In this document: positions 620 through 25,171 of the stretch, one piece after another | Numbering within the stretch: position 1 is the first letter of the stretch | Layout of the letters: each line of letters starts with the position of its first letter | NCBI RefSeq assembly: GCF_006345805.1 | Contig: NW_021834722.1 | Location: forward strand, 1 to 27,097 | Direction of reading: 5' to 3' | DNA from: Octopus sinensis | Lineage: Eukaryota | Length of the DNA stretch: 27,097 nt | Notes under the pieces: generated by a model | What the model saw: the letters and a program-made list of their open reading frames with translations, nothing else | What the model was told of the DNA's origin: nothing | The model's database searches: none | Translations under genes and position numbers: made by a program

Positions 620-2347
620 TTAATATCTGAGGTAAATAGTAGAATCATTTTCTACATTATAATAATCCAGTTTTTGCGTATCGTCATCAATTTCAACCAT
701 TTTGCCCAAATCCTTTCATATTTCTAGAAAAAGAAAACCTTGTCGAATAAGAAAATAGAAAGTACATTCTTGCGCTGTATTTCAAACAATTTCCTCAATA
801 ACATTTTAAATCTGCATATCTCAATTAGACCTATTTAAAATGGTATAAATAACAAAAAATAACATGGGAATTTCTTCACCAACTCCTTCCCAGAATTTTC
901 ATTTACAATCTTTAATGCTACAAATATTATAAAATATGAACATATTAAATCCTCCGCGATTGTTTTCTTGATTATTGAGCTCCCGGTAAGCCCGTTTTCA
1001 GGACCTTGGTAGAATAAAAAATATTTAAATCCAAACTATTGCATTTTTGTGATTCTTTTTTGAATTTATTGCTGTCAAAACGGCTCTTGTTTGCAGCTTC
1101 AGCTAAAAATCGTTCATTGAATGTAATTTCTATTCTGTTGAGGACCTTTATATTGGTTAATATAGAAATTAGCAATGGTCTCTGAGAATTTTTAATTGTA
1201 CCAAAATCACAACACAATTCCCTCAATTTTGGAAGGAAATTTAGTTCCTCAAATGAACATATCTATATAAAATGCATTATTAGACACTAACATCATCAAT
1301 AGGACAATCTTTAAGATAAAGTACAGATAAGGCTGGAAATATTCCACCTTCATTTTTGGGGATTTTAATTGAACGGATAGGATTCGAAGAGATATTTAGA
1401 AAATTCAATCTATAAATAATTTTAAAAAATAAAATAATAAAAAATACACTTTTTAAGAAAACGAAGATCGTTGATGTTATCCCACGACGAAATAAGATTA
1501 AAGCTCAGATCAAGCGAAGTCAACGAATCACAAAATACAGATAAATATGATATTTCCGAAATCAAATTATGACTCAATGAAATTGTTTCAAGTCCAGTCC
1601 ACATACACATTGAAATAGAAACATTATCGAGAAAACAGCAATTTAAAGCAATGGAAACAAGAAAATGTTTTTCCCCACTTTTTTCTTTCCATTGAATCTT
1701 ATTAAAACTCAAATCAAGAAATTCTAAATTTTGAATTTTCCTACAAATTTCCAAAACATCCTCTCCGTTTGATATCAGAGAATTGCACAAATTCAGTTGA
1801 GTTGTCTGGCCAAGAAAACTATCAATTTCTTCATTATTTTCCGGTTTACCAAGACCGTTAACATAATAGTCGGACAAATCAATAATAGTAATAAAATTAT
1901 ATTTTCTAATAAAATATAAAAATATAAAACTTGGCTGATTCTTTTAATTTTTTTGCACCAATAAAATTTATTGATTTATTAAAGATGGTAGTGATGACTT
2001 GGTCCTCTTCAATTTCATTTGATGTTAAATAAAAATTATATTTTTTTATTAAAGCTTCATAAAATGTTAAGCCGAAATTTGCCTTTGAAGGAGAAATGAA
2101 TGATCCACTTTGTGGGTTGCTTAAATGTTATAATAGAAATGCAAACTTGGCTTTGAAATAGAATTGGCCATTAAATGTTCCGTTGTGTTTACCTCTTGAT
2201 GAGTCATCCCAGTCAACACCAATCCACGTTCCTTAATAGATTTCATAGTGACGGTCTTAAACCATTTTTATCCTTTACTTCACCGTGGTACTTCACAGTT
2301 CCTATGGAGCCATTAAGCTCAACACGATCACCACATGAAATAGTCAT
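620..2347 (-). CDS. TBCE: Tubulin-specific chaperone E (CAP-Gly, LRRs, C-terminal ubiquitin-like domain), ~486 aa, 9 introns of 24-40 nt, intact
   Basis: Spliced translation gives MTISCGDRVELNGSIGTVKYHG, GTWIGVDWDDSSRGKHNGTFNGQFYFK..GSFISPSKANFG (CAP-Gly), LRRs (LEFLDLSFNKI, LTSLDLSFNLISSWDNI), VLNRIEITFNERFLAE and MVEIDDDTQKLDYYNVENDSTIYLRY*. All introns are GT-AG. 1728 nt minus 267 nt of introns = 487 codons with no frameshift. Confidence 0.95.
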
Positions 2348-4205: not shown

Positions 4206-4305
4206 GAGCCTGGAGGTCAGCTCAAAGTCGCCGCACTGCGTATCGAGTGGCAGTTTCCGCGGAGCACTGCGACCGAGATTCGCTGGAAGAGCCGTCTGGC
4301 ACTCA
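4206..4305 (-). mobile_element. ~100-bp 3' fragment of a CRE-clade retrotransposon, same family as 15855-16876
   Basis: The minus strand reads ttccagcgaatctcggtcgcagtgctccgcggaaactgccactcgatacgcagtgcggcgactttgagctgacctccaggctc, which aligns closely with 16745-16827. It encodes LFQRISVAVLRGNCHSIRSAATLS*. Confidence 0.8.
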
Positions 4306-4392: not shown

Positions 4393-7180
4393 TCAATTAT
4401 TATTGAGATTACTATTTTTTTCAACAAGCTTCTCAATGCCAAGTGATTCACCATCGGGAATACCATAGCCCTTTAACATCCCCAATGGATTAGAAGGAGT
4501 AATACAGGAGTCAGAGGGTTCCTTCCTAATACACCGATCAATCTCTATCGACGAAAAGTACGCCACACACTATACAATATTAAAACACACCAACAGAAGG
4601 AAGATCTCTCATTCCAAGAGAATTAGAAAAGGCACACCTCGTTAAAAGATGCGCAACTTGTAGTAAAAATGCAGCTTCATAACGTTTAGAAGAAGGCACT
4701 ATAAATCGTACTTCATCGTGAATGCTGAGTGCTAGACGGCCGCTAATTCCAGCATCCGACATCAACCAACGAGTTGCTGTGAGCAATAAATGCAAAAAAT
4801 CGACAGCAGAGCTCTGTATAACCCAATTTAGTCGGGAACGAGAAAACTATTTTATGTAAAAAATAACTACTTTTTGACCAACAGCCGACGGTGTCAGTGC
4901 CTGTGATATAAGACAACCTAGAAATGGCGTACGAGGGTTCTCTGAAAATGCAATTGCCTCCATCACATTAAAGACGTCAGATTCGCTAACAAATGATTAA
5001 AAATATACCTTCCTCCAACCCATCGATAATCTCTGGATAGGCTAAAAAGATTAAATATATTAGTAAACCTCACACGTCTCCCTTCGTCTGACGATACAAA
5101 TTATTTGCCTTTAATAAAGCCTCCTCCTGCGACAATTCGCATTACAGGCCATCATCATTGCGGCAGTGAGTTTACTCCAGAACCATAAATTCGGAAAAAA
5201 TTAAAAACCTAAACAAAATATTCAAATTTAAACCTTAGCCTGAGAACGAGAGAGTCCAATGATCTCAGCAGTGCGACTATGGAGATCGGACCCCTCAGAT
5301 TTACTTCCCTGATGAAGCATCCACGAAAACCCAGTACTTCCTAAAAATTCACAAAAAAACTTATTGCCATGAATTTTTGAAAAATATGCATCCCCAAGAA
5401 GAGAAGCAATCCACAACTCCTCCAAATCTACATCTGCCCCAACAAAATGATAGTCCACGGGCGATTGAATCATAGCTTTCAGTTCACTACCAATACGATC
5501 AGTCTGATAGTAATCAAAGCTAACAAATACTCTTGCATTACTAGCAGTCAGCCATGTAGGCTCAACTGCCCGTCTCGTCACTGTCCCTGAGACAATAACA
5601 CGTGGAAGTATTGCCCCAAATAAACTTTGGAGGTTGGGGAAGCAATCTCGTTTTGATTTAACCAAACGACGTATTGAGACCTCAAAAATGATTTAATTTT
5701 AACTTAATTCTATCGAGGTTATTTCGCCAATAAGTCAAAGTTGTGGCCCAAATCAACAAATCTGTGGATTCTGGAGCAAACTCAGAGACTAATTGACCGT
5801 TTTTGAGTTTTTCAACGTTTTCCTTGCATAAAACAATGTTGATTTTACGAGTTGAACAATCCTATAATAATTTGAGTAGTTTTTATAACTTGTCTTAAAA
5901 ACGACAAAAATTCCAAGATGGAGGTACCCCATCGACATCCTGTGAAAGGGGGATTCTTTTTTCATAATAGGAACTTAATTTCCGCTCAAACCAATTCCCT
6001 AACTACAATAAAATTAATTAAAACAACCTTCCAATAAGTATTATTCCGTAACTCAACATTATTGAGTATTTCAGGCCCATTTTTGAAAATATTTTCTAAA
6101 AAATCGTCACAATTTTCTCCGGAATGATTAAAGAGAAACTTTACAATATTAAAAAGGGCAAATCTAAAAAATTCAAACCACAAACAAATACTTTGAAGGA
6201 TAAGGATATAATTTATCCATATCAGATCTTTCAGTCACTCCAAGCGCGGGAACAAGAAATCCCCAGCCATAAACGGAGTGGTAAAATAACGGACATCCAA
6301 AAAAACTTAGTTTTAGCAATTTAGTGACAATTCTCTTTGAAAGTGACAAATTCGACGGAGAGAATGTCGTCCTTTCATTACTTTGAGGACTATCACATAT
6401 ATTTCTATACCAGCTGACAATTTTAACCAGGATTTACTTAACCGTGGATAATCATTGAGATAGTTCATGCTTAGAACACGTTCCTTCTTGAATAGTTCAG
6501 AAAGTTGATCGATTTGTTGTTTTTTGGGTATTTTTTGTGTTTGAAGGGAATTGTTCTCCAATCAAGGTCCCAGGTCCAAGGACAATCAGCAGATTTTTTG
6601 ATATTGCCACGGCGCTGTTTGCAGCGTTTAATAAAAGACGTTTTTTTTTTTCTTTTCATCTTGGAGGAATTTATTTTGTGACCGACTCAAAAAATGTTCC
6701 CAATTCTCGTTTACTGGCAAATACATGGATCCCATTTCTAACATTCCAGCCAAAGTCACATCCGACGGAAATCTTAAGTTATAAAATCAAATTAAACCGA
6801 GAACAATACAACTTAAAAAGACGACTAAATACTCTGAAAGTAGCCAGTACGTCATTAGCACAATAATCAATAAGTTCATTGAATGATTGACGTACATCAG
6901 TCACTGATCCTGTCACGAATATTTTTCGGAGGTCTTTTTAAGAGTTGACCTCTGCAGTGATATGCATGGACGTCTTGTAGGGAGTGGTTGTCCCCAAATT
7001 CATCCAAATCTCAGCTTCTGTCTCATCTTCCACTATTGACTTTTGTCGAATGGCCATTTTTGATCACTCGTGAATCCCGAACAAGCAATGTGGAGTGACA
7101 TTGTGGCTCTGTTGTCTTCTGCTCGTATTATAATTAAATCTATCCAGAACAATCTTAACTATATTTTACGTACAACAATA
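4393..7180 (-). pseudogene. POLG: Mitochondrial DNA polymerase gamma catalytic subunit; not translatable as assembled (pseudogene or consensus errors); N-terminal exonuclease motifs missing
   Basis: Motifs seen: TMSLHIACSG, SLQDVH, exo [71 protein letters not shown], motif [13 protein letters not shown], motif B AKVFNFFRIYGSG, NWVIQSSAVDFLH, motif C SIHDEVRF and TPSNPLG..YGIPDGESL. TGA stop at 4393-4395. At least 8 frame breaks (near 6985, 6937, 6645-6597, 6525, 5890, 5625, 5172, 5133). Gene identity is secure; functional status is not. Confidence 0.85.
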
Positions 7181-7249
7181 TATTACTTGTAAATAAAAAA
7201 TGTACGTGATAAAATTGGTTAAAAAATATGTATCCATAATATTAGTTGT

Positions 7250-8370
7250 ACCTTAATTCGAAATCTTAACCCATGGATTAATGACTGATTAAGGAGGTGC
7301 TACAGGTACCAAGGCCTCAATTAAATATAAATTTGTCTCACTACAATCAATTAAATGTACTGAGAAATCAACAAAAACATCCCGCTGCTTTTTGCTAATT
7401 ATAATTTCTTCATTAGCAATGTCTGGAAAATTTGTGGCCAACTTTTTAAAATTTCCAACTTTTTTGATTTTTCTATTTCCTTTCTAGATGTAGATGTAGT
7501 TTCTTCTGGGTCTATAATAATTTTACAAACTTGATGAATTACGTCGGTGAACTGGACAGTTATACGGGCACACTTAACATTAATCAAGGAAATGAACAGA
7601 TTGTTTTAATTACCTAATTTTAAATATATTTTTGTCTAAAGTCTATTTTTTCTTTCAATGGTATATTATTGGTTTTCAAAAATGATTGAATAGTTTTCGA
7701 CATACTCAGTTTTATTTTCTATTTAAGTATTTTGTGAAAACTTTTACAGAATAGAAATACATTTGATAGATTTCAGGTTATTAAACTCATATTTTTTGAA
7801 AATGAGATTGGTAATAAAAAAAAAAATGTAAAACCATTATTTGGGCCTTCTCACCGTTAAAAATTTGTAATACTTCATTATGAATCAAGTAATGAAGAAA
7901 AATTATTTAATGGGCATTATAAAGTCATTTAATATTGTTTTCAGCAAATCATCTTGACAGAAACTAGCATTCAATTAACTTTTCTTTATAATAATTTATA
8001 TCAATTAATTAACTTCTTTCATACTTAGAATTGACTTAATCAAAGAAAAAACTAATTGACGAGACCGTCGACTAAGAAGTACCTTGTGTGCTGTTAAACA
8101 CTTAGTCGGCTCATATTTGCGTTCAAGACCAGCCCCGACTATACATAATGAATATGTTACTTATGTATTAAACACCAATATAATAAACTAGTCATTGCAG
8201 AATATAAGGAGTTTAATAGAATGACTGGTAAATAGTAAATGACCGCAAAAAATAATGAGCCTCCAAAAGTATCATCATCAAACATTCAAGTAAAAATCCT
8301 TATTGAGAAAGTATAAATTTAGAAAAGAAAATATGAATTTGGTTCAAAACGTCCGTAAAAAGTGCATTAA
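7250..8370 (-). CDS. Unidentified multi-exon host gene with an N-terminal hydrophobic segment; frameshifted as assembled; boundaries approximate
   Basis: Exon-like blocks: FDDDTFGGSLFFAVIYYLPVILLNSLYSAMTSLLYWCLIHK, a 22-nt GT-AG intron, GAGLERKYEPTKCLTAHKVLLSRRSRQLVFSLIKSIL, CARITVQFTDVIHQVCKIIIDPEE and KQRDVFVDFSVHLIDCSETNLYLIEAL. Frame break near 7440. No family recognised. Confidence 0.4.
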
Positions 8371-8559
8371 AACTTCTAAACGAAAATTTTATTTTAACAC
8401 AGCTTTTTGCTATAAATTACACCTGTCAAACCTTTATTTCAAAGTTAACTAAAAATCCGCCGTAAAATAATAACATCTGAATGAAAAGGAACATAATTAA
8501 AAAAATGACTTACATTAACTACAATAAAATCAACAAAATCTGATAAAAAATAAAGAGTT

Positions 8560-9328
8560 CTACTTCATGAATATGCTGATATTTCTCAAAAAACCTAAGA
8601 TAAATAAAAAATAAAAAAACCTGCATTCGCAGCCGTCGGCACGATATCTTGAACAAAAGTTAAAAAAAGTTCATTTTCTAAATACTCCTTAAACATGTCA
8701 GGTTTAAATTTCAACTTAAAATAATTATTTTTTGCCATAGTCTAATAGAATAAATAAATAATATTACAGAAGATTTGTAATTTTTCTCATAACTTTCCCA
8801 TGGCTGAATTTCGATAATAAGAATTCCACCTGGCAACAAATCAGCATAAATTCTCTGAAATGCTATTCGAAGACCTTCGTCGCCATTCACAAGATGAATC
8901 CACTTTGTGATACTCAAAGCCATAATAACATCATATTGTTTCTTTGGAATATATCCGTCAATACTATCGATAACATAATTTTCCTAAAAATAAAATAAAA
9001 TCTATACATAACAGAATGATATATTCGATGGAAATGATTCATTTCTATTATTGTTGGGATTAGAAATGCTGCGTGAGGCTCTCAGAATAAGTGATTTGTC
9101 AATATCTATTCCAAGGATATGTCGTGGTTTAAATCTTTTAGCAATCATAATAGTAATATATCCAACGTTGCAGCCAATGTCCAATATATTTTTGTCTTTA
9201 AACCACTCACATTTCATAAGTGATAGTCTCGGATCTTCATTATTCTGAATTCTGTATCCATAATAACGATCGTAATTCCCATATGGAAAATATTTTTTCT
9301 TTGTTTTTTTCTTATTAATATTAGTCAT
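8560..9328 (-). CDS. MEPCE: 7SK snRNA methylphosphate capping enzyme / Bin3 methyltransferase, ~230 aa, 3 introns (24, 26, 26 nt), intact
   Basis: Motifs [71 protein letters not shown]. The spliced frame is continuous to TAG at 8560-8562 (231 codons). The ATG at 9328 is the likeliest start. Confidence 0.93.
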
Positions 9329-9992: not shown

Positions 9993-10424
9993 TATATAGA
10001 TAATCTGCAATGGTAGCAAGTCCAATCCTAAAAGGATTGTTTGCACCTGAAAAAAATAGTCTATAGTCCTTAAAAATTCATCTTTGACCAGTAATAAAAA
10101 CTCATAAAAAGAATAAAGTTTGGTTAGTAAAGAAAGATTTTAATAGCTAGATTAAAGCTATAGTCTGAATCGAATTCTACATTAATAATATAAATATTGA
10201 AACTTTTCACTGTTTTTAGATTTCATAATTAGATATTTTTTGCTTTTAAGAATCAGCATAAAACAAATAAATGTGATTGTAGTCAAAGAATAATTCCAAT
10301 AAAGATTATATAATTTTATTGATTTCCATAGGGTCTCTGAAATTCACAAATGAAAAATTAACCAGGTTTTTATTAAATGCACTTCTAAAAATTAAAAAAA
10401 GTAATAGCTTACGATCACTTTTAG

Positions 10425-11917
10425 TTTTACTCTTCGTGGCGGAAACTAAAAGTTTAAAACATATGAATCACATGCGCTCGTCGTGGTGGTGGCTAAAATA
10501 TTTAAACATATAAATCACTTGTAGTTGTGCTTTTCGTGGTGGGGACTAAAATATTAAAACATATAAATCACTTGTAGTTGTGCTCTTAGTGGTGGGGACT
10601 AAAACATTAAAACATATGAATCGAATCACTTATAGTTGTGCTGTTCGTGGTGGGGACTAAAATATTAAAATATATGAATCACTTGTAGTTGTGCTTTTCG
10701 TGGTGGGGACTAAAATATTAAAACATATAAATCACTTGTAGTTGTGCTCTTAGTGGTGGGGACTAAAACATTAAAACATATGAATCGAATCACTTATAGT
10801 TGTGCTGTTCGTGGTGGGGACTAAAATATTAAAATATATGAATCACTTGTAGTTGTGCTTTTCGTGGTGGGGACTAAAATATTAAAACATATAAATCACT
10901 TGTAGTTGTGCTCTTAGTGGTGGGGACTAAAACATTAAAACATATGAATCGAATCACTTATAGTTGTGCTGTTCGTGGTGGGGACTAAAATATTAAAATA
11001 TATGAATCACTTGTAGTTGTGCTTTTCGTGGTGGGGACTAAAACATTAAAACATATGAATCGAATCACTTGTAGTTGTGCTTTTCGTGGTGGGGACTAAA
11101 ATATTAAAAAATATATGAATCACTTGTAGTTGTGCTTTTCGTGGTGGGGACTAAAATATTAAAACATATAAATCACTTGTAGTTGTGCTCTTAGTGGTGG
11201 GGACTAAAACATTAAAACATATGAATCGAATCACTTATAGTTGTGCTGTTCGTGGGGGGACTAAAATATTAAAATATATGAATCACTTGTAGTTGTGCTT
11301 TTCGTGGTGGAGACTAAAATATTAAAACATATTAATCACGTGTAGTTGTGCTCTTCTTGGCGGGGACTAAAATATTAAAACATATTAATCACTTATAGTT
11401 GTGCTCTTCGTGGTGGGGACTAAAATATTAAAACATATTAATCACTTGTAGTTGTGCTTTTTGTGGTGGGGACTAAAATATTAAAACATATTAATCACTT
11501 GTAGTTGTGCTTTTTGTGGTTGGGACTAAAATATTAAAACATATTAATCACTTGTAGTTGTGCTCTTTGTGGTTGGGACTAAAATATTAAAACATATAAA
11601 TCACTTGTAGTTGTGCTCTTAGTGGTGGGGACTAAAACATTAAAACATATGATCGAATCACTTATAGTTGTGCTGTTCGTAATGGGGACTAAAATATTAA
11701 AATATATGAATCACTTGTAGTTGTGCTTTTCGTGGTGGGGACTAAATTATTAAAACATATAAATCACTTGTTGTTGTGCTCTTAGTGATGGTGACTAAAA
11801 CATTAAAACATATGAATCGAATCACTTATAGTTGTGCTGTTCGTGGTGGGGACTAAAATATTAAAATATATGAATCACTTGTAGTTGTTGCTTTTCGTGG
11901 TGGGGACTAAAATATTA
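10425..11917. repeat. Tandem satellite with 53-58-bp monomers and a 164-bp trimeric higher-order repeat
   Basis: Monomer ~AATCACTTGTAGTTGTGCTTTTCGTGGTGGGGACTAAAATATTAAAACATAT(A/G). The TTTTCG variant recurs at 10531, 10695, 10859 and 11023 (53+58+53 = 164). Roughly 27 monomers; the left edge is degenerate. Confidence 0.95.
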
Positions 11918-11923
11918 ATTGAT

Positions 11924-12719: not shown

Positions 12720-14396
12720 TTAAGGTGCATTCCGAGATTTTAGATATATCATAGAATTAAGAGGACTTTGAACAACGGTTGAAATTCTATTCCAGGTATG
12801 ACATTTTTTTCTAAAAATATTTCATAATTTTGAATTAAGTAGGCTAGAGTTATTTTTATCTGTATATTCGCAAATTTTTCTCCACTGCATCTTCTTTGGC
12901 CATATCCAAATGGTATATATGAGCATACGCCCATTTTTTTGATATCATAGTTTAAAAACTATAAAGTCGAGATATCAATTTTTACCGATCAGGATCAAAC
13001 TCTGTCGGATTTTCCCAAACACTATTTAGATGGTGATTTGCAGAAGGAGATATACAGACATACGTCCCTTTGAGTATATCATACCCAAACATTTTCTGAC
13101 TTGTTAATGATTTACCAGAAAACCATATCGTTTTTACAACGCCGCGCAATAAGGGCAGCTGACGGTCTTAAACGTAATGTTTCTTTAAAACATCTATCGA
13201 GAAGGTCCATTTCTTTTAAATCATCATTAGTAAGATTTTTAAAATCTTTTCCACAGACACTAACTTGTTCTTCATAGAGCTTGTCCTAGTAATTAACTTC
13301 TAATCCATTAAACCTGAATTTTTTTATTATGAGCAATAAACAGTGTTAGCCAAGCGGCAGTAGAACAAGGGGTTTGTATTCCTGCTATAAACTGGCCTAT
13401 TATCAGAGCTCTAATAACTCTTTCCTCGACTTTACGCCCGTCACTAAGACAAATATTATCCTATGGTACTGATATTCAAAATCCAATAAAAATTGCAGCA
13501 TATCATTTCCTGATATTCCAAAAATGCGTCTCTTATGAATTTCTTCGATAAGCATAGCGTTCAGTTTTAACTGTGAATTGTATGCATCACTTTTTAATGA
13601 AGTGGACTCGAAATTACTTTTTTACTTTTAGAGGAAACCAAGAAGGAAGAATATAGACTAAAATTGAAAATACGTTGTTTATATCTGATATCCATTTCAT
13701 TCTGCTGTCAAAAACAATATTCCTTACATCGTTACCTTTTATATTAATAAAACCCTTAAACCACATAAACACTCGCATAACATCAAAGTAAAAAGTTCAA
13801 AAAATTCATAATGAATGTCTTGAATTTGAATATATGATTAAACCTGTAGAATTTGAAGGCTTGTCAAACTTTGACATAAAATTAATAACTTCAACAGAAA
13901 TTTTTGGAATGAATATATCCAAAAATTCTTCTTTAAATAAGAATAAAAAAAGTTGTTTGTGTTGTTGAAAAATCATAAATGAACCATTCCATCATACCTT
14001 TAATGTATCATTTTTTCCAAAAATAGGATTTATAAACTTATCATAAATTTCCTCTTCATTTAAATCGTTGTTTCCTTTGGAATAAAATAATTCAGTGGCT
14101 TGACTCCCAAGAAAGACCGTAATAATTTTTCCCATCATGTTGAAGCTCACAACTGGACCGTACTAAATGTTCAAAAATAGATGAGAACTACTTTTTCATA
14201 TGCTTTAACTAAAAAGGTCGTTATGTCGTTTTTAAAGTGCCATATATGACCAAAAAATGGAATCTTAGAAGGTATGAAAGGAGGTAAAGAAAGGTTCTTT
14301 TATTTAATACCAAAATACCTTTTTCGATTTGCTGTCATAAAAATAGCTGAATAAAACCAACGGAATCAATAAAATGGCTAAAAGAAGTTGAATCAT
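12720..14396 (-). pseudogene. CYP51: CYP51-clan cytochrome P450 (sterol 14-alpha-demethylase-like), ~471 aa, 10 introns of 22-29 nt; three single-base lesions as assembled
   Basis: N-terminal anchor MIQLLLAILLIPLVLF; PPFIPSKIPFFGH; AYEKYGPVVSF; DLNEEEIYDKFINPIFGK; LPSWFPL; I-helix AGIQTP; KETLRLRP; FDPDR; heme loop FGYGQRRCSGE. Lesions: an acceptor reading TG instead of AG at ~13974, a -1 at ~12955 and a -1 at ~12768. These could be consensus errors in a functional gene. Confidence 0.85.
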
Positions 14397-14452: not shown

Positions 14453-15612
14453 CAGAGGTTTCCAAATGGGGAGGCGCGCCTCCCTAGGGAGGCGTTGACT
14501 CGTGTCAAGGGAGGCGCGAAAAGTATTTCAGAAACATTTTTTAGAAAATATATCTATGTAAAAAACGTGACTATATTCCGATAATAAGAGTTATTAATTT
14601 AAAAATTATATTTTTTCAAAAATTTATTTAATTTATAGACAATTAAATAATTTTAACACATGAATAAATTCTTGAGTGGTTGCAAAAGAAAATTCACGAA
14701 TAATAAAGATTTTGACGATGGTTCAAAAAATCAAAATGATTGGAATATAATCAATACCACTGATTAGAAGGGTGTTTGAACTCAAAGATCAGTTGCAGAT
14801 TTTTCTTGAGGAATGATATTGAAGATGCAAAGTTGTTCAGGATGATGACTTTATTGTCAAATTTGCCTATTTAGTTGACATTTTTGGAAATTGAGTATAT
14901 TGAATAAATCAATGCAGGGACCACAACTACATTTATTCTCTCAAAAGGACAAAAAGTAAAAGCATTTATGAAAAAAATTGGTGAATTGGAAATCAAATAT
15001 AAAAAAAAATATATGACACACAGTTCCCACTTAAACACCGTTTTGCGCCATAGTGAACATTGAAGCAAACAAGACATATTTGCTGAACATTTGGATTGTT
15101 TGTTGAAGCATTTTGCTCACTATTTTAAAGATCTCGACTGTAAAATGTTCGAATGGATACAGAATCCATTATTGATGAAGAAGATAATCAATTTGCATTG
15201 ACAACTTTTGAAAAAGAAAAATTGATAGAATTGTCATGCGATACATTATTGAAACAAAAATTTGAGAGAGAACCGCTAATTTCTTTTTGGTTGAATGTAA
15301 GAACGAATATGAAATTTTGTCGAATAAAGCAATGAAAGTTTTGTTGCCATTTGCTACTTCATATTTATGCGAAACTGGATTTTCTGCACTAGCTGCAATT
15401 AAATCTAAATATCGAACTCGTTTAGTAGTGACTATGAGCTAAGAGTAGCACTCTCTGCGATGACACCAAGATTTGAAAAACTTTGCGCCAAGATGGAAAA
15501 AAAATTATCTCATTAACTTTTTGTTTTAAAAAATTGTTTTTGATAAAATAATAATTGTATTATATTATGGAATATAAAGGGAGGCGCGTAAAAAAAAGCT
15601 TGGAAACCTCTG
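14453..15612 (+). mobile_element. hAT (Buster/Charlie-type) internally deleted DNA transposon
   Basis: 13-bp perfect TIR CAGAGGTTTCCAA; 8-bp TSD GCGTAGCG (14445-52 and 15613-20); subterminal GGGAGGCGCG motifs. Broken transposase C-terminus: [56 protein letters not shown]. Confidence 0.95.
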
Positions 15613-15854
15613 GCGTAGCGTATAAAAAATTCGATTTTCATAGAAATTTAAAGCGTAAATTTTTCGATTCGTCGACAAATGCAATCATTGGTTGGTTCGC
15701 AGTTATCATCCAGAGAAAGATGTTTTACTGTTTCATTATTATTAATAGCACTTTCACAGAACCAAAGAACGTTTTGTTAACTAAGGTCCTGTTTGTGCCA
15801 GCCACACAATTTTTTTTCAAGAACAAGAGAAAAAGTAACTTATTTATTCTAATT

Positions 15855-16876
15855 CGGAGGGATCGGAAGGATCGGCCTCCGTTCGCCTAAAGACCTGGCG
15901 CCGCATGCCCACTTCTCCTCAGTTTCCAGCAGCCGCCAACTTGTCAGAGAGGTTCTACTCCCATTCAACGAACTCTCTCTGGATTTACCGGCCGGCGACC
16001 TGCAAAAATTTTGGACCGCCGCCAACCTCACAATCCCTTCTGAGATGTCCAAACAGAGGGATTGGGACGAGATCTGGGCTGCACACTTCTTTTCAACGCT
16101 ACAGCCCCTACTGGACCAGCACCGCCTGGCGTGCTTGCTCTCCGCAGCACAAAAACACAGTGGCTCCTGGCTCGACGCATTCCCGTAGGCATCAATGGGC
16201 TCGCTTTTGGACGACGAGACCCTCCGGATTGGAGCTGCTCTCCGGTTGGGTCTTGACATCTGCACGCCCCATCGGTGCCGATGCGGTGGTGTGGTGGACG
16301 CGAGAGGTCTTCATCCCCTCTCGTGCCGCCGGAGCGCAGGCCGCTCGCCTCGTCATGGGGCTCTCAACGACGTCATCTCGCGAGCACTGAAAGCTGCCGG
16401 CTTCCCGAACGTACTGGAACCAGTCGGTCTGGACAGGGGGGACGGCAAGCGTCCGGACGGGATGACAACCTTCCCATTTAGGAAAGGTAAGTCCCTGGTT
16501 TGGGATGCAACGTGCGTCGACTCTTTTTCGGCGACAATGCTTTCCAGGACTGTCGCCAACCCGGGCTCCACCAGTGCGCAGGCTGAAGAGACAAAGAGGA
16601 AGAAATACCGATGTATTTCGGACGCTTTTAAGTTTGCCCCCCTCGATTTCGAAACCTCCGGAATTGTCGGAAAGGTCGCGACTCAACTCCTCACAGACAT
16701 TGGCAGGAAAATCTTTTCGAAAACATACGACCGGAGGGAGACGTTCCAGCGAATCTCGATCGCTGTGCTCCGCGGAAACTGCCACTCAATACGCAGCGCG
16801 GCATCGTTGAGCTGACCCTCAGGCTCTCGGCTATTCTCTCACCTACTTACTAGCATCTTTTCTTGTTTCTTTAAAC
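15855..16876 (+). mobile_element. 5'-truncated CRE-clade non-LTR retrotransposon (CCHC knuckle and restriction-like endonuclease only)
   Basis: ORF 16195-16815: CRCGGVVDARGLHPLSC, RH, KRPDG, WDATC, KRKKY, FETSG, QRISIAVLRGN. The upstream frame has QHSGSW-like remnants. 12-bp TSD TTTATTCTAATT (15843-54 and 16877-88). No clear poly(A). Confidence 0.92.
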
Positions 16877-17203
16877 TTTATTCTAATTAATCCGAAATGA
16901 GTGAGTTTTCTCTTTTCTTTGAGTTTTCTTTTCATTGACGTGCGGCTGAATAAGACTAGGAACCCCGTGACATCCCATCCGGAGTCCAACTTATATTTGG
17001 AATCCGCGTGTGATGAAATGTCTATGAGGGAGTCACTCGTCAAACCTGATCGGAGCTTCCGGCAAAGCCAGCCTCTGAGAATAGAACCCGGAACCAAGGA
17101 ATTCAGCAACGAATTCTCGACCGTTCTGCTACGTTTCATAGAAATTATTATTAATTCAGAAAATTACGTTTTTATTAAAAATTAATGATTAAATTAGTTA
17201 AAT

Positions 17204-17625
17204 TCAAAGCAACATTTGAGGAGGTACACTGTCAGCAAATGGCGGCTCTGCAAAATCTTTTTTCTTCTTTTTATACTCTTGTCTTATTAAATATGCTCGT
17301 TCAGTCTATTTTACCAAAACCAATCATCCTACCTGTTTTCTTCTATTCACGCATTCATTCATATCTTCTATATAAGAAGCACAAGCTGTTTTTATTTGAT
17401 TTTTCCCCACCTGGGCTGCACATTTAAAAAAATCTCTATGAAATTTATCGCAGGTTTTTCCAGCACGTGATTGTAAGAGAAATGAATATTTTGTATACGA
17501 GTTGTGAATTAACGGAAATGCCCCCAAAGGCCCTCCTAAAAAGTAAAAATTAATTTATTTAAATTTTGATATGATAATAATAAACCTTTTTCATCAAAAT
17601 AGCAATAAGGATCAAGCAGCTTCAT
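17204..17625 (-). CDS. NDUFS5: Complex I accessory subunit NDUFS5 (twin CX9C), ~114 aa, introns of 50 and 27 nt, intact
   Basis: MKLLDPYCYFDEKG|GPLGAFP...KTCDKFHRDFFKCAAQVGKNQIKTACASYIEDMNECVNRRKQ|TERAYLIRQEYKKKKKDFAEPPFADSVPPQMLL*. Twin CX9C spacing plus the KQ..R..IR...FAEPP tail matches invertebrate NDUFS5. 115 codons in frame. Confidence 0.85.
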
Positions 17626-18552: not shown

Positions 18553-19175
18553 CTAGCTCGGCAGCTCGCTTCGCTCACCGCGACCTAGCTCCTGCGGAGG
18601 GCCTGTTTCATCAAACAACTATAAGTTTATGTAGATGTATAAAACTACCTGGTTTAATGTAACCCTATTCTATCGCCTGTTGATAAACGATGTTTGTCGT
18701 CCGTCCTTCCTTGGCATATATGAATAAATTTTCTCTTCTGCCTACCCTCGAGCATCCCACATACAGCTGTCCATGTGAAAAGCACTCACTCTCTAAAAAT
18801 AACCCAACTACCTTTAATGACTGTCCCTGGGCCTTGTTTATTGTCATTGCACACTTTTTTTTCATTTTTTGTGGTTATTTTTTTTATATTTAATTTTTTC
18901 ATTTTTCCATTGTAATTTCCTTTTTTTTCTTTTTTTGTTTTTTACTGGCGGAATGGGGCAGGGGGAGATGCGGCAGGCAAGAAAGCGACACACAAAAAAG
19001 CGACACACAAAAAAAGATTTAATTAATTACCTTATTAAGCTGACCGTTTTTTTTCCTCAGCTTCGTTTTTCCTCCTTCGGTTATCTATTTAAAAAATTAT
19101 TTTTGAATAATAAAAAGTTTAAGAAAAGAGGCATACCGAAAATAAATTCTATCATTACGAAAAACTCAAGTAAAT
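18553..19175 (-). mobile_element. Helitron 3' arm (helicase C-terminus remnant, GC hairpin, CTAG end), inverted copy of 24510-25131
   Basis: AMTINKAQGQSLKVVGLFLESECFSHGQLYVGCSRV...NIVYQQAIE* (18665-~18853). The minus strand ends GAGCGAAGCGAGCTGCCGAGCTAG|T. Confidence 0.9.
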
Positions 19176-19255
19176 CTTAATAATAAAATGGTATGGTGTG
19201 TGTCTGTCTGTCTGTCTGTCTGTCTGTGTGTGCACACCAACTTCAAATTGGCAAT

Positions 19256-19875
19256 ACGATGTCCTCGACTTACATGATGAGGTCCTTAAAACCTTCCCCC
19301 TAAAAAAATTAAAAAAAAATTTTCTGCATTTTGGTTAAAATGAACAACTACAATGTCCTCGACTTACATGATGAAGTCCTTAAAACCTTCCCCCCCAAAC
19401 AAATTAAAAAAAAATTTTCTGCATTTTGGTTAAAATGAACAACTACAATGTCCTCGACTTACATGATGAAGTCCTTAAAACCTTCCCCCCCAAAAAAATA
19501 AAAAAAAATTTTCTGCATTTTGGTTAAAATGAACAACTACAATGTCCTCGACTTACATGATGAAGTCCTTAAAACTTCCCCCCAAACAAATTAAAAAAAA
19601 ATTTTCTGCATTTTGGTTAAAATGAACAACTACAATGTCCTCGACTTACATGATGAAGTCCTTAAAACCTTCCCCCCAAAAAAATTAAAAAAAAATTTTC
19701 TGCATTTTGGTTAAAATGAACAACTACATGTCCTCGACTTACATGATGAAGTCCTTAAAACCTTCCCCCCAAAAAAAATTAAAAAAAAATTTTCTGCATT
19801 TTGGTTAAAATGAACAACTACAATGTCCTCGACTTACATGATGAAGTCCTTAAAACCTTCCCCCCCAAACAAATT
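19256..19875. repeat. ~94-bp minisatellite, left part (about 6.5 units)
   Basis: Unit TTTTCTGCATTTTGGTTAAAATGAACAACTACAATGTCCTCGACTTACATGATGAAGTCCTTAAAACCTTCCCCCCAAAAAAATTAAAAAAAAA. CTGCATT starts at 19324, 19419 and 19513. Variation is mainly in homopolymer runs. Confidence 0.95.
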
Positions 19876-22800
19876 TTTTTTTTTTTTTTTGCACGTTGTT
19901 GCTGTTGTGGTGCACTTTTTTCTTTTTCTTTTCATTGTTATTTGCTATCCAATAATCCATTGTTGCTTCCCTTTCTCTTTTTTGTTTTTCTTTTCCTCTT
20001 TCTCTTTCTTTCTATCTCACCAATAATCCATTTATTGCTAATTCTAATTTTCCATATCTATGTCTGTCTGTTCTGTTTGCAATATCCGTAATAATCGGAA
20101 AAAGACCATCCGTTGTGACCGTTGTTATGCCTTTTTCCATTTATCCTGCATCAAGCTTTCTAAGAAATCTGCCTCTTCCCTTTCCCGATGGGTTTGCTCT
20201 GCTTGCTCTTCTTTCCCCCCGTCATATTTCGCTCCTGCCATCTGTACCGGGTCCTCTGATTTTACTAATCCTATCCCTTCGCCGGACCCCTTCCTGCTTA
20301 ATCCAGAGTCTGTCTTAAGACTCGCTCGTGATTACCGGGCGTCCTATCGTATTCCTATAAGAATTCCTCGTTCTGCCCGTTTTTCCGCGGCGAAGGCTCT
20401 GTCTGCTTTGATCGAGTCAGTCATTTGTGTTCAGTCCATTCCGAATTGGAACCGTTTGTTTTGCTTTGCCATATTTGCCCTGGGCTCCCCAGTTCAAGGC
20501 TTGGGCTCGGTAAAATCCCTTTCCTCTTCCATCAAGGAAAATATTAATAAGTTCATGGAGGATTCCTTCATTCTGCCTCCTCTTCTGGGCAAGTCCCATG
20601 AACCAACTACTCTTAAAGATAATCGTATTCGTTTACGCAAACGTGTCAATTCCTGCCTTATGGCGCATGATGTCGGCTCTGCGGTCCGTATTCTTTCGTC
20701 TTCCGATTCCGTCCGTTCGATAACCCCGGATGTCCTCAAAATTCTCAGCGCCAAGCACCCGGCTGGCGATGTCCCTGCCTTTTGTGCCCGGACCCCTGAG
20801 GAGGTCTCGATCGCCTCTTCATCTGTCCAACAACTTTTGTTTGCTTTGAAATCTTTCAGGGGGAACAGTAGTGGTGGTGTTGACGGTCTCCGTCCCATTC
20901 ACTTAATGGACCTCATCTCCAATACTGCTGAGGCTGGAAACCGTCTTTCTCAATCCATTGCCAAGCTTTGTAACCTATTTCTCCGTGGGGACATATCCGA
21001 GCATGCCAGACTGCTCTTCTTCTCTGCGAACCTGTCTGCTTTGGGGAAGAAAGACGGCGGCATCAGACCTATTGCCGTCGGGAACGTTTTTCGTCGCTTG
21101 TTTGCAAAGGTCGGATGCAAGCTTGTAATTCCTTCTATTAGCGACGAACTCCAGCCCATTCAGTTGGGTGTGGGGGTACCTGGTGGGTGCGAGGCCTCGG
21201 TCCACGCTGCCCGGTGTTTCATTGAATCGGCTCGTCTCTCAGAGCGGCCCCAGTTATTATTAAAATTGGATGTGAAGAACGCTTTCAATTCGCTCAATAG
21301 AAAGCATCTTCTTGAGGTTTGCAAGGCCAGAATTCCTTCTCTGCTGCCCTTCATTTTTCTTTCTTATGGTAACCCGAGCCTCTTGGTTGCTGGCGATTCT
21401 TTCATTTCGTCTTCCTGTGGCGTACAGCAAGGCGATCCTTTGGGTCCTTTATTATTTGCCCTCTCGGTGGACTTTGTCGCCCGCAGGATTGCGTCCCCTC
21501 TTAATATTTGGTATTTGGACGACTGTACTATTGGTGGTCCGCCCGACATTTTGCTAAACGACTTGCAATCTCTACTCCCGGCGTTGTCATCTATTGGTCT
21601 TGAAATCAATTCTCTAAAATCTGAAATCGTTAATCTTAACGTCGAAGACCTCACCTTCGAAGACCTTTTTGCCCAGTTTCGTGGCCTCTTGCCCGATCTG
21701 AGGCAGACCTCTTATTCTGAACTTGAAATCCTGGGTGCCCCGATCCACCACCAATCGGTCTCTCGTATTCTCGATTCCAAGAGAAATGCTCTTGCTTCTC
21801 TTTGTGATAAACTTGTGGACATCGATCCCCATCCCGCTTTTTTTATCCTCAAAAACTTTTTTTGATTCCGAGGATCAATTATGTCCTAAGGAGTTCCTGT
21901 TGCTTTTCTGTTCCCTCTGCTTTGGAGTCTTTTGACGCTCTGGTGCGTTCTTCAGCCGAGATTATTTTTAACGTCAAGTTCGATGATGTCGGTTGGCGTC
22001 AGGCCAAACTTCCTGTTCCTTTTGGTGGGCTTGGGCTCCGCTCGGCTCTCGACATTTCTCTTCCCGCTTTCCTTTCATCGTCTTCAGGATTGTATCTTCT
22101 TGTCCATAAGATTCTTGAAAAATCGCCCGGATCTCGTTTGGACTCTGATATTAATTCTGCACTTTTGCTTTGGAAGGAAAAAGGGCTTGAGTTCCCTTCT
22201 GATAGGTCCCTCCAACGTGAATGGGATAAAATTTTAGTAAGCATCATGCGGACTCGTTGGAGGCTCTCCTGAACCAGCACAGACTGGCTTGTTACCGTGC
22301 CAGCCGCCAACCGCATTCTGGCTCTTGGCTTAACTGCCTTCCTTCGACCCATTTGGACACCTGTCTTGACTCCGACGCCCTCCGTTTTGGCATTTGCCTC
22401 CGCCTCGGACTTCCGATCTGTAGTCCCCACCCCTGCCGGTGCGGATCTACTATGGACGTATACGGGCTCCATGCCCTCTCCTGCAAGAAAAGCGCGGGTC
22501 GTATTCCACGCCATTCGGCGATTAACAGAATCATTCTCGACTCACTCGAAAAGGCCGGCTACCCTTCTGTCCTTGAGCCTAAGGGTCTCGACCGTGGTGA
22601 CGGGAAAAGGCCGGACGGCTCTACGTTGTTCTCGTTTTATTCTGGGAGACCTTTGGTCTGGGATTCCACTTGTGTGGATACCTTCTCAAAGTCTTTCATC
22701 AACGAATCGGCCTCTCTTGCTGGGTCTCGTGCTAATAAGGCTGAGCTTTCGAAGTGCCGGAAATATCAGTCTTTGATGGATGACTTTTGGTTTTGGCCAA

Positions 22801-23040
22801 TCGTTGTCGAGACTTCCGGCGTCTTTGGCTCCGGGACCCTCACTTCCCTAAAGAAATTGGGACATCTTTGTTCTTCGCGGTCCAAGGACCCTAGGGAATT
22901 TACTTTCCTCATTCAGAGGATCCTGCTGGCTGTCATGCGTGGCAACAGCTGTTCCCTCCGTCTCGCTGGGAGAATTTATTAGTTTGTTGACTTTACTTAG
23001 TAGTTTGACCCTAAAAAAAAAAAAAAAAAAAAAAAAAATT
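19876..23040 (+). mobile_element. Near full-length CRE-clade non-LTR retrotransposon (PHD finger - RT - CCHC - restriction-like endonuclease)
   Basis: T-run at the 5' junction, pyrimidine-rich 5' UTR, single ORF region 20060-22982, ~30-nt 3' UTR and A26 tail (23013-38). Probable short TSD AAATT (19871-75 and 23036-40). It interrupts one minisatellite unit cleanly. Confidence 0.95.
20060..22982 (+). pseudogene. Retrotransposon polyprotein, ~974 aa if two single-base deletions are repaired
   Basis: PHD C4HC3 (CSVC..CDRC....HLSC..WVCSAC); RT motifs GGVDGLRP, IRPIAVG, QLGVG, KLDVKNAFNS, GVQQGDPLGP, WYLDD, ILGAPI; GGLGLR; CRC...H...C knuckle; RH, KRPDG, WDSTC, KCRKY, VETSGVFG. -1 shifts at ~21857-63 (T7 run) and ~22245. 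Confidence 0.92.
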
Positions 23041-24052
23041 AAAAAAAAATTTTCTGCATTTTGGTTAAAATGAACAACTACAATGTCCTCGACTTACATG
23101 ATGAAGTCCTTAAAACCTTCCCCTCCAAACAAATTAAAAAAAAATTTCTGCATTTTGGTTAAAATGAACAACTACAATGTCCTCGACTTACATGATGAAG
23201 TCCTTAAAACCTTCCCCCCCAAACAAATTAAAAAAAAATTTTCTGCATTTTGGTTAAAATGAACAACTACAATGTCCTCGACTTACATGATGAAGTCCTT
23301 AAAACCTTCCCCCCAAAAAAATTAAAAAAAATTTTCTGCATTTTGGTTAAAATGAACAACTACAATGTCCTCGACTTACATGATGAAGTCCTTAAAACCT
23401 TCCCCCCCAAAAAAATTAAAAAAAAATTTCTGCATTTTGGTTAAAATGAACAACTACAATGTCCTCGACTTACATGATGAAGTCCTTAAAACCTTCCCCT
23501 CCAAACAAATAAAAAAAAATTTCTGCATTTTGGTTAAAATGAACAACTACAATGTCCTCGACTTACATGATGAAGTCCTTAAAACCTTCCCCCCCAAACA
23601 AATTAAAAAAAAATTTTCTGCATTTTGGTTAAAATGAACAACTACAATGTCCTCGACTTACATGATGAAGTCCTTAAAACCTTCCCCCCAAAAAAATTAA
23701 AAAAAAATTTTCTGCATTTTGGTTAAAATGAACAACTACAATGTCCTCGACTTACATGATGAAGTCCTTAAAACCTTCCCCCCCAAAAAAATTAAAAAAA
23801 AATTTCTGCATTTTGGTTAAAATGAACAACTACAATGTCCTCGACTTACATGATGAAGTCCTTAAAACCTTCCCCCCAAAAAAATTAAAAAAAAATTTCT
23901 GCATTTTGGTTAAAATGAACAACTACAATGTCCTCGACTTACATGATGAAGTCCTTAAAACCTTTCCCCCAAAAAATCAAAAAATTATTTTCTGCATTTT
24001 GATTAAAATGAACAACGCGAATGTCCTCGACATTCATGATGAGGTCCATTAA
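23036..24052. repeat. ~94-bp minisatellite, right part (about 11 units; last unit diverged)
   Basis: Same unit as 19256-19875, resuming in register after the retrotransposon poly(A). The final unit (from ~23990) has substitutions and runs into unique sequence. Confidence 0.95.
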
Positions 24053-24268
24053 AACCTTCAAGGCAAAAATCTCACGTATTAAGAATATCCCTGATGAAAA
24101 CGACAGCGAGAATATTAACAATGATGAACTCCCAATTATTCGCGATAAAGAAATTCAATTCATCCTATGTTTTTCTCTTTAAAATTAAATGCATATATCA
24201 TTATCGACCATGAATCAAAATTAAAGCTATTATCATATTGACTTTGACAGAATGTGCAATCACAGATT

Positions 24269-24473: not shown

Positions 24474-25171
24474 AGCGCAATCAGAAGAATTTGCGTAAAA
24501 ATATTAACTATTTACTTGAGTTTTTCGTAAAGATAGAATTTATTTTCGGTATGCCTCTTTTCCTAAACTTTTTATTATTCAAAAATAATTTTTTTAAATA
24601 GATAACCGAAGGAGGAAAAACGAAGCTGAAGAAAAAACGGTCAGCTTAATAAGGTAATTAATTAAATCTTTTTTGTGTGTCGCTTTCTTGCCTGCCGCAT
24701 TCCGCCTGCCGTATCTCCCCCTGCCCCATTTCCGCCAGTAAAAAATAAAAAAGAAAAAAAAGGAAATTACAAAGGAAAAATGAAAAAATTAAATATAAAA
24801 AAAAATAAACCACAAAAAATGAAAAAAAAGTTTGCAATGACAATAAACAAGGCCCAGGGACAGTCATTAAAGGTAGTTGGGTTATTTTTAGAGAGTGAGT
24901 GCTTTTCACATGGACAGCTGTATGTGGGATGCTCGAGGGTAGGCAGAAGAGAAAATTTATTCATATATGCCACGGAAGGACGGACGACAAACATCGTTTA
25001 TCAACAGGCGATAGAATAGGGTTACATTAAACCAGGTAGTTTTATACATCTACATAAACTTATAGTTGTTTGATGAAACAGGCCCTCCGCAGGAGCTAGG
25101 TCGCGGTGAGCGAAGCGAGCTGCCGAGCTAGTTATAAATACATTTTGACTAATTTGTTCATTTAGATTAGT

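Follow-up and report, generated by a model that had tools for sequence, protein, structure and literature searches.

The genes for replication of mitochondrial DNA (mtDNA) in the myxobolid myxozoan Henneguya salminicola, including the polymerase gene POLG, are reportedly absent or present only as pseudogenes, and its POLG is said to contain premature stop codons. Published work on this species describes the loss of mtDNA together with major parts of the oxidative phosphorylation complexes I, III and IV, and its genome, as described in 2026, has a median intron length of 27 bp, a GC content of 29% and no mtDNA (PMC13644364). Among animals, reports of introns this short are confined to myxobolid myxozoans and Dicyema (PMC13644364), and myxozoan mtDNA evolves very fast (PMC11034133). 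The POLG of Myxobolus squamalis (KAF1744944.1) is an intronless, uninterrupted open reading frame (ORF) of 1121 codons (3366 nucleotides [nt]; QWKW01000463.1, 1418-4783) with intact exonuclease motifs exo I (MIFDVETS) and exo II (LIVGHNIAFDRSF), and the exonuclease-deficient POLG mutators (mouse D257A and yeast mip1 exo-) are point mutants of an intact, expressed enzyme. Here we describe a POLG locus on the minus strand of a 27,097-nt stretch of contig NW_021834722.1, filed under Octopus sinensis (the whole stretch is called the window below), which is probably a non-functional, decaying, unprocessed pseudogene of the ancestral intron-bearing myxobolid POLG.

The locus resembles the H. salminicola pseudogene in its apparent myxobolid lineage and in the presence of POLG only in broken form; the genome features of the window fit the GC content of 29% and the median intron of 27 bp in that species, the median of the window introns being 26 nt, and an apparently broken, oxygen-dependent CYP51-like neighbor of POLG in the window fits the loss of aerobic metabolism. 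The two differ in the kind of damage, which is said to consist of premature stops in H. salminicola but consists of single-base frame shifts and a lost 5' third here, and in the intact NDUFS5 gene that lies near POLG in the window, although Complex I is reported to be largely lost in H. salminicola. That species is a candidate source of the window only, and no near-identical sequence was found in the databases searched. The TMS.H block, exo III and polymerase motifs A and C are shared with the M. squamalis POLG, but not its continuous frame or its intact exo I and exo II. Like the mutators, the locus has lost exo I/II function and retained polymerase motifs; unlike them, it has a polymerase frame that is itself broken.

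Results

Positions 4393-7158 of the minus strand carry an animal-type POLG gene, long stretches of which are 55-65% identical to human POLG, in a window that is eukaryotic and AT-rich. We analyzed the locus with a protein-to-genome aligner written for this purpose, which allows GT..AG introns in any phase and penalizes stop codons, and made frameshift-aware spliced alignments to three references: human POLG, P0122 and the M. squamalis POLG. The conceptual product obtained after frame repair (800 residues) matched the family A polymerase domain (Pfam PF00476) with 47.1 bits against a cut-off of 34.3. It also matched the POLG exonuclease domain (PF18136) with 63.2 bits, but only positions 214-282 of the 282 in this profile were covered, so the domain is incomplete. 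Pieces of the repaired product could be aligned to solved POLG chains, and the motif C exon (4595-4846), the cleanest of all, by itself recovered 569 POLGs in an exhaustive search. Its best named full-length match was KAF1744944.1 of M. squamalis (64% identity), and a sequence from a Tara Oceans scaffold matched slightly better. Together with the introns described below, the M. squamalis match points to a myxobolid myxozoan as the source of this POLG, any species being a candidate only; a dicyemid or orthonectid origin was dropped on the basis of that match and of the published intron data (PMC13644364). No second POLG fragment was detected within the window.

Most of the apparent breaks in the gene proved to be ultra-short introns. 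Across five genes of the window we identified 31 confident introns whose median length was 26 nt and whose GC content was 0.21 ± 0.07 (maximum 0.33); those of POLG are very AT-rich GT..AG introns of 22-32 nt. Because introns occupy positions shared with the POLG of other animals (Table 1), the locus is the original one and not a retrocopy. After removal of 13 AT-rich introns, POLG was still unreadable as a continuous frame without approximately 8-10 single-base repairs, and to that extent the preliminary description was right to call the gene broken. Five of the shifts, at about 6929 (A5), 6540 (A6), 5640 (C4), 5175 and 5143, are backed by at least two references, and others, at about 6995 (G4), 6650 (A11) and 6600 (A6), are probable. 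The homology carries on beyond every shift, and its spacing is exact or nearly so; YGSG-x-KLTAAMMMACN-x-ELSQEEALLKANNLYRQTKG, for instance, lines up with human POLG and with YGSGKGLARNMLRDCCKDLSEEEI of P0122. The W..G..NSL..VH block, which the preliminary description had overlooked, is present as IWMNLG and DNHSLQDVH in two other frames. Within a stop-laden, AT-rich block at 5862-5903 there are GT..AG candidates of 41 and 44 nt, and excising either of them breaks the frame.

The POLG frame can formally be held open by GT..AG "rescue introns" of 16-64 nt. These stretches have an exon-like GC content of 0.34-0.49 (z up to 3.8), compared with the maximum of 0.33 in real introns, and their excision deletes colinear homologous residues; on both grounds we do not accept them as true introns. 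The 16-nt (6934-6949) and 31-nt (7010-7040) GT..AG stretches were rejected in the same way, by colinearity and GC content.

We used neighboring genes in the window, read with the same aligner, as controls (Table 1). POLG required 8 repairs in 2390 exonic nt, whereas the TBCE-, Bin3- and NDUFS5-like genes together required 1 in 2496 nt (P = 0.017). Homopolymer runs of at least 4 nt were broken in 5 of 56 cases in POLG and in 0 of 69 in the three controls (P = 0.016). The M. squamalis locus (QWKW01000463.1) served as a positive control and, with this aligner and the human guide, was read as a single continuous ORF without introns or frameshifts and with exo I, II and III intact. We therefore conclude that the damage is gene-specific and was not created by the method.

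The 5' third of the gene could not be recognized. The earliest POLG block begins at TMSLH, with an ATG at 7099-7101, and neither PF18136 nor tblastn gave an earlier match. Positions 1-162 of PF18136 had no match when 7000-8800 was translated in its three minus-strand frames, where the only other trace was the weak TMSLH piece (profile positions 163-187, E = 0.06), and the best tblastn hit of the N-terminal 235 residues of M. squamalis POLG to the window had an E of 1.3. Querying with the exonuclease-side region in a word-indexed homology search gave no match, and protein-level scans for the exo I and exo II motifs were at the level of chance, with 92 to 399 of 500 composition-matched random sequences scoring equally. 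Neither exo I, exo II, an N-terminal domain nor a targeting peptide was detectable in 7159-8590, the 1.4 kb that separates TMSLH from the Bin3-like gene, the end of which is placed near 8.6 kb by its Bin3-domain tail. The preliminary description had already stated that POLG is recognizable only from TMSLH, that no FDVE-type exo I lies upstream and that RFLD is missing before TMS. All three statements agree with our results: profile hidden Markov model (HMM), tblastn and calibrated motif scans were empty for exo I, and the window reads EDNRATMSLH.

The same description had proposed a ghost of exo II at 7143-7179, which did not survive calibration. With its own 12-mer, a codon-level scan ranked this site best and 2 of 500 random sequences equaled it, but with a family-wide degenerate exo II motif 59 of 500 did so, and the M. 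squamalis exo II motif did not select the site as its best. With an unbiased choice of motif, the putative ghost thus does not exceed chance; the sole point in its favor is its position, about 17 codons before TMS compared with about 21 in relatives. Other upstream candidates were also discarded. An exo I-like remnant seen by eye (KKQRDVFVDFSVHLIDCSE, about 7330-7390) was without HMM, phmmer or motif support; splice chains from that stretch to TMSLH exist in 942 open versions, so that openness there is meaningless; and when the M. squamalis N-terminus was aligned to the upstream region under highly permissive pseudogene settings, the result was a nine-frameshift patchwork that was dismissed as noise. 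Exo I, II and III are kept in the M. squamalis POLG and in the closest unnamed sequence, and exo I and exo II are present in P0122. Few POLG blocks are as well conserved as exo I and exo II, and both are intact in the nearest relatives; neutral decay acting uniformly would therefore not erase them and leave the polymerase motifs almost unaltered. The 5' exons may either have been deleted or rearranged, or have been released from constraint earlier.

The retained part bears out much of what had been read there at first. Exo III (YCANDVLAT), the acidic residues of motif A and motif C (SIHDEVRF) are all present, and the LPHK...NVGSP block is degenerate through substitutions, DCSTRKINIVLCKEN standing in its place. 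In motif B, which reads AKVFNFFRIYGSG, K and the second Y are unchanged. F replaces the first Y, a residue that 24 of 24 sequences have, and this is unusual, whereas the second change that had been pointed out in FNFFRIYG falls at the following position, where G, A, S and F all occur naturally among POLGs. Of 35 near-invariant positions in the palm/fingers core, the locus departs from 3 (S to L in motif A, Y to F in motif B, and one probable alignment slip), and most other POLGs change none. Among columns at least 90% conserved in 45 full-length POLGs, the retained region violates 15 of 118 (12.7%), compared with a median of 3.4% and with 5.5% in M. squamalis. This substitution excess is mild and would fit a recent release from constraint in which slippage-prone runs broke first.

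The M. squamalis POLG is itself about 26 residues shorter at motif B and the O-helix (AK.FNYGRIYG) and appears to be without the motif B segment; no motif-B-like peptide was found in any frame of the 5.1-kb M. squamalis contig. The apparent loss is odd for a species that keeps mtDNA.

Table 1. Positions of POLG features, introns, frame disruptions and neighboring genes in the window
Feature	Position	Strand	Remarks
Dead 5' space, reaching to where the upstream Bin3/MEPCE-like gene ends	7159-8590	-	GC 0.27; single-copy in the window
Putative exo II ghost of the preliminary description (IVVRKI/S*DCSG)	7143-7179	-	Suggestive by position only
Retained POLG-homologous region	4396-7158	-	About 2.39 kb of exon; 13 short AT-rich introns, one 41-nt intron-like block, 8-10 frame disruptions
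TMSLHIACSGF, first recognizable POLG block	7072-7104	-	Human TMSMHMAISGL; ATG 7099-7101
GT..AG stretch, 31 nt	7010-7040	-	GC-rich (0.45); probably a frame-damaged exon, not an intron
W..G..NSL..VH block: IWMNLG, then DNHSLQDVHAYHCRGQLLK	6936-7009	-	Split where a G4 run (about 6992-6995) has a -1 deficit; comparison with DWMKVGSPNSLAAVH of P0122 scores 36
Frame disruption at A5 run, ...GQLLK / DLRKIFVTGS	6928-6944	-	Alternative 16-nt GT..AG intron costs 8 colinear residues
Exo III motif, YCANDVLAT	6839-6865	-	Aspartate kept; YxxxD pattern present
Intron, 25 nt	6773-6797	-	
Probable -1 disruption in A11 run, after EKKKK	6637-6657	-	
Probable -1 disruption in A6 run, AISK / SADCPWTWDLDW	6587-6604	-	
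Frame disruption in A6 runs, FKHKK / PKKQQIDQLSELFKKERVLSMNYLNDYP	6526-6545	-	Human, P0122 and M. squamalis references
Intron, 29 nt	6414-6442	-	
Intron, 22 nt	6164-6185	-	28 nt with other donor
Intron, 22 nt	6003-6024	-	
Stop-laden AT-rich block, ...SWNFC / DCSTRK...	5862-5903	-	GC 0.20; 12 codons with three stops
Degenerate LPHK...NVGSP counterpart, DCSTRKINIVLCKENVEKLKNGQL	5790-5861	-	Conserved G.P of NVGSP lost
Intron, 23 nt	5681-5703	-	
-1 disruption in C4 run, after WLNQNEIAS	5629-5643	-	
Intron, 27 nt, after ...TASNAR	5504-5530	-	Position common to other animals' POLG (P0078, P0081)
Polymerase motif A	5402-5446	-	Acidic residues kept; near-invariant S to L
Intron, 24 nt	5337-5360	-	
Intron, 25 nt, after ...SQAK	5209-5233	-	Position common to other animals' POLG (P0003, P0006, P0007)
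Polymerase motif B, (AK)VFNFFRIYGSG	5176-5205	-	Otherwise invariant first Y is F
-1 disruption, YGSG / KLTAAMMMACN	5168-5181	-	No homopolymer
-1 disruption, MMMACN / ELSQEEALLKANNLYRQTKG	5130-5143	-	No homopolymer
Intron, 32 nt (GTGAGG...TTTTTAG)	5042-5073	-	
Intron, 23 nt	4986-5008	-	
Intron, 24 nt	4847-4870	-	
Polymerase motif C, LSIHDEVRFIV	4697-4729	-	
Intron, 25 nt	4570-4594	-	
POLG stop codon TGA	4393-4395	-	After ...LVEKNSNLNNN
POLG, control comparison			13 introns, 8-10 frame repairs (same aligner)
TBCE-like gene	640-2347	-	7 introns; 1 repair (-1 at GGG) or a GC-rich 38-nt intron
Bin3/MEPCE-like gene			Full-length family member; 3 introns, 0 frame repairs
CYP51-like cytochrome P450 gene	12760-14414	-	Nine introns of 22-29 nt; 2-3 frame repairs
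NDUFS5-like gene, complete	17215-17625	-	MKLLDPYCYFDEK, intron of about 50 nt, twin-CX9C core 17351-17452, 27-nt intron, C-terminal exon and stop; 2 introns, 0 frame repairs

The neighboring genes differ in condition. The best matches of the Bin3-like protein are only 46% identical and come from nematodes. The NDUFS5-like gene matched Pfam PF10200 with 27.1 bits against a cut-off of 21.2 and has a start, two introns, a stop and no frame problem. A gene of its 334 nt would stay intact by chance at the POLG lesion rate with P = 0.33, so that its integrity says little about Complex I or mtDNA; the preliminary description was correct in reporting it as intact, but its use of the gene as an argument against full mtDNA loss is weak. 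The view that the TBCE-like gene is perfectly clean was rejected. Its frame at about 960-997 (minus strand) can be restored either by a -1 repair at GGG or by a 38-nt GT..AG intron, and since the latter has an exon-like GC content of 0.50, one deficit probably stands. Either an essential gene has a single indel here, real or introduced by assembly, or the intron is atypical.

In the CYP51-like gene an in-frame TGA lies near 13992, past which no AG could serve as the end of an intron, and a T5 run immediately after the acceptor near 12954 is one base short. The gene is probably a second decaying one, dependent on oxygen, and its apparent decay fits a loss of aerobic metabolism. At 13590-13617 (minus strand) a frame change in the same gene can be solved by a 28-nt intron or by a 19-nt one (gtaaaaaagtaatttcgag). 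Because the 19-nt option gives the better colinearity with human CYP51, introns shorter than 20 nt may exist in this genome.

The window also contains several repeats. A GC-rich (0.47-0.54) non-long terminal repeat (non-LTR) retrotransposon stands out in the AT-rich genome, with a 601-residue reverse transcriptase ORF followed by two further frames (4229-4297 on the minus strand, 15800-17000 and 20060-22982); a 5'-truncated tail of this element (RRLFQRISVAVLRGNCHSIRSAA) lies approximately 100 nt downstream of the POLG stop codon. Repeated coding-looking units (KMNNYNVLDLHDEVLKTFPPK...) flank the retrotransposon at 19200-19900 and 23000-24100 (plus strand). In a tandem array at 10414-11918, a 53-nt unit is repeated about 28 times at 85% match, and there is a higher-order periodicity of 164 nt. 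A C-terminal fragment of a PIF1/Helitron-like helicase is present in two inverted copies (18668-18874, minus strand; 24666-25016, plus strand), and a hAT-like transposase remnant, dimerization-domain-like and split over two frames, lies at 15144-15439 (plus strand).

Discussion

The introns at ancestral positions and the enrichment of lesions relative to constrained neighbors are what would be expected of an unprocessed pseudogene, and we consider it probable that the locus is the decaying ancestral copy of POLG. Constraint on mtDNA replication would have been lost fairly recently; slippage-prone homopolymer runs would have broken first, and substitutions would so far have altered conserved residues to a modest extent only. 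As a setting, a lineage whose mitochondrial genome is lost or on its way to being lost would be the most economical, and there the POLG of the window would be the putative sole copy. Among the three readings offered in the preliminary description, those of a dying gene or of a loss of mtDNA replication are favored, and the working truncated polymerase is disfavored.

Several observations weigh against a pseudogene. Each POLG disruption is an indel of one base, in most cases a deficit at a homopolymer (A5, A6, A6, A11, C4, G4), and no clear nonsense substitution was seen among them; one-base deficits at homopolymers are also a signature of long-read consensus error, and the lesions are known here from the assembled sequence alone. 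No catalytic residue has been lost from exo III, motif A or motif C, and a few other full-length POLGs also violate 10-13% of the conserved columns. When only the five best-supported repairs are counted, the difference between POLG and the controls is not significant (P = 0.10), and TBCE, which is expected to be essential, may carry one -1 deficit of its own at GGG. The human POLG, CYP51A1, TBCE, MEPCE and NDUFS5 sequences were entered by hand and served as alignment guides only; every key POLG result was also obtained with database sequences or Pfam models.

These points could be accommodated by a functional POLG whose assembled sequence contains consensus indel errors and whose 5' exons are too divergent or have been misplaced by misassembly. 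The need for -1 repairs in the TBCE- and CYP51-like genes and the retention of all catalytic acidic residues, together with the homopolymer deficits and the lack of nonsense substitutions, agree with such an artifact. On the other hand, 0 of 69 runs of at least 4 nt were broken in the neighbors against 5 of 56 in POLG (P = 0.016), the breaks at about 5175 and 5143 are away from homopolymers, no excision in frame is possible for the 41/44-nt intron-like block, and the NVGSP block degenerated through substitutions. Divergence of the 5' part alone is unlikely, given that exo I and exo II belong to the best conserved parts of POLG and are intact in M. squamalis, and the in-frame TGA of the CYP51-like gene is beyond any indel error. 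The neighbor and M. squamalis controls thus weaken the proposal that all breaks are assembly errors, and we retain it as an unlikely alternative. A slightly better, though still small, chance goes to a decaying paralogue: mtDNA would be kept, an intact and possibly intronless POLG would lie elsewhere, and the window would contain the superseded intron-bearing parental locus. The functional-looking M. squamalis POLG is an intronless ORF while the window copy keeps ancestral introns, so a retrocopy could have replaced its parent in myxobolids, and NDUFS5 is intact. However, the integrity of NDUFS5 is uninformative (P = 0.33 for zero repairs), the retained part is well conserved (32 of 35 core invariants are kept, and the motif C exon is 64% identical to M. 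squamalis), implying recent decay and not an old duplication, the window holds no second POLG fragment, and the CYP51-like neighbor also looks broken, in keeping with a loss of aerobic metabolism.

A working polymerase truncated at its N-terminus, devoid of proofreading and starting from the ATG at 7099-7101, seems very improbable to us. Such an enzyme would have exo III, motifs A and C, part of motif B and an ATG at TMSLH, and the very fast evolution of myxozoan mtDNA (PMC11034133) would suit it. Past the ATG, however, no continuous frame exists without 8-10 repairs, enriched relative to the neighbors, or GC-rich pseudo-introns that delete homologous residues; no targeting peptide was found; and conserved columns are violated more often than in M. 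squamalis. Relatives with fast-evolving mtDNA keep exo I-III, among them M. squamalis and the closest unnamed sequence, and for this reason the loss of proofreading is not supported as the cause of fast mtDNA evolution in myxozoans, as the preliminary description had suggested it might be. Programmed frameshifting or insertional RNA editing at the breaks is barely credible: nearly all breaks are of one kind (-1 deficits), as in systematic recoding systems, but the sites, some of them runs of A, C or G and others not runs, share no sequence signal, the constrained neighbors do not use such a mechanism, and we know of no recoding system of this type in Cnidaria. The decay of the locus is uneven, with an unrecognizable 5' third and 3' two thirds that keep 32 of 35 core invariants, which hints at a loss in two steps. 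Exo I/II and the N-terminus might have been deleted or released well before the polymerase half, with mutator mtDNA replication and error catastrophe driving the loss of mtDNA; in a variant, a second myxobolid lineage, not H. salminicola, would be losing mtDNA replication independently. We regard this scenario as improbable.

A POLG pseudogene of this kind is already known from H. salminicola, and if the window comes from that species, the case itself is known. What is added here is an intron-aware description of the lesions, evidence that the loss of proofreading is not a myxobolid trait, and the uneven decay. The practical value is mostly cautionary. Stops and frame changes in conserved genes of myxobolid genomes are often introns of 22-32 nt, and pseudogene calls in this group, published ones included, need alignment that is aware of both introns and frameshifts. 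Intron GC content is a useful discriminator here, real introns lying at about 0.21 and exonic GT..AG stretches at 0.34 or higher. If the pseudogene reading is true, the window offers a snapshot of an animal dismantling the maintenance of its mitochondrial genome, with the polymerase caught shortly after constraint was lifted, at its ancestral locus and with its ultra-short introns still in place.

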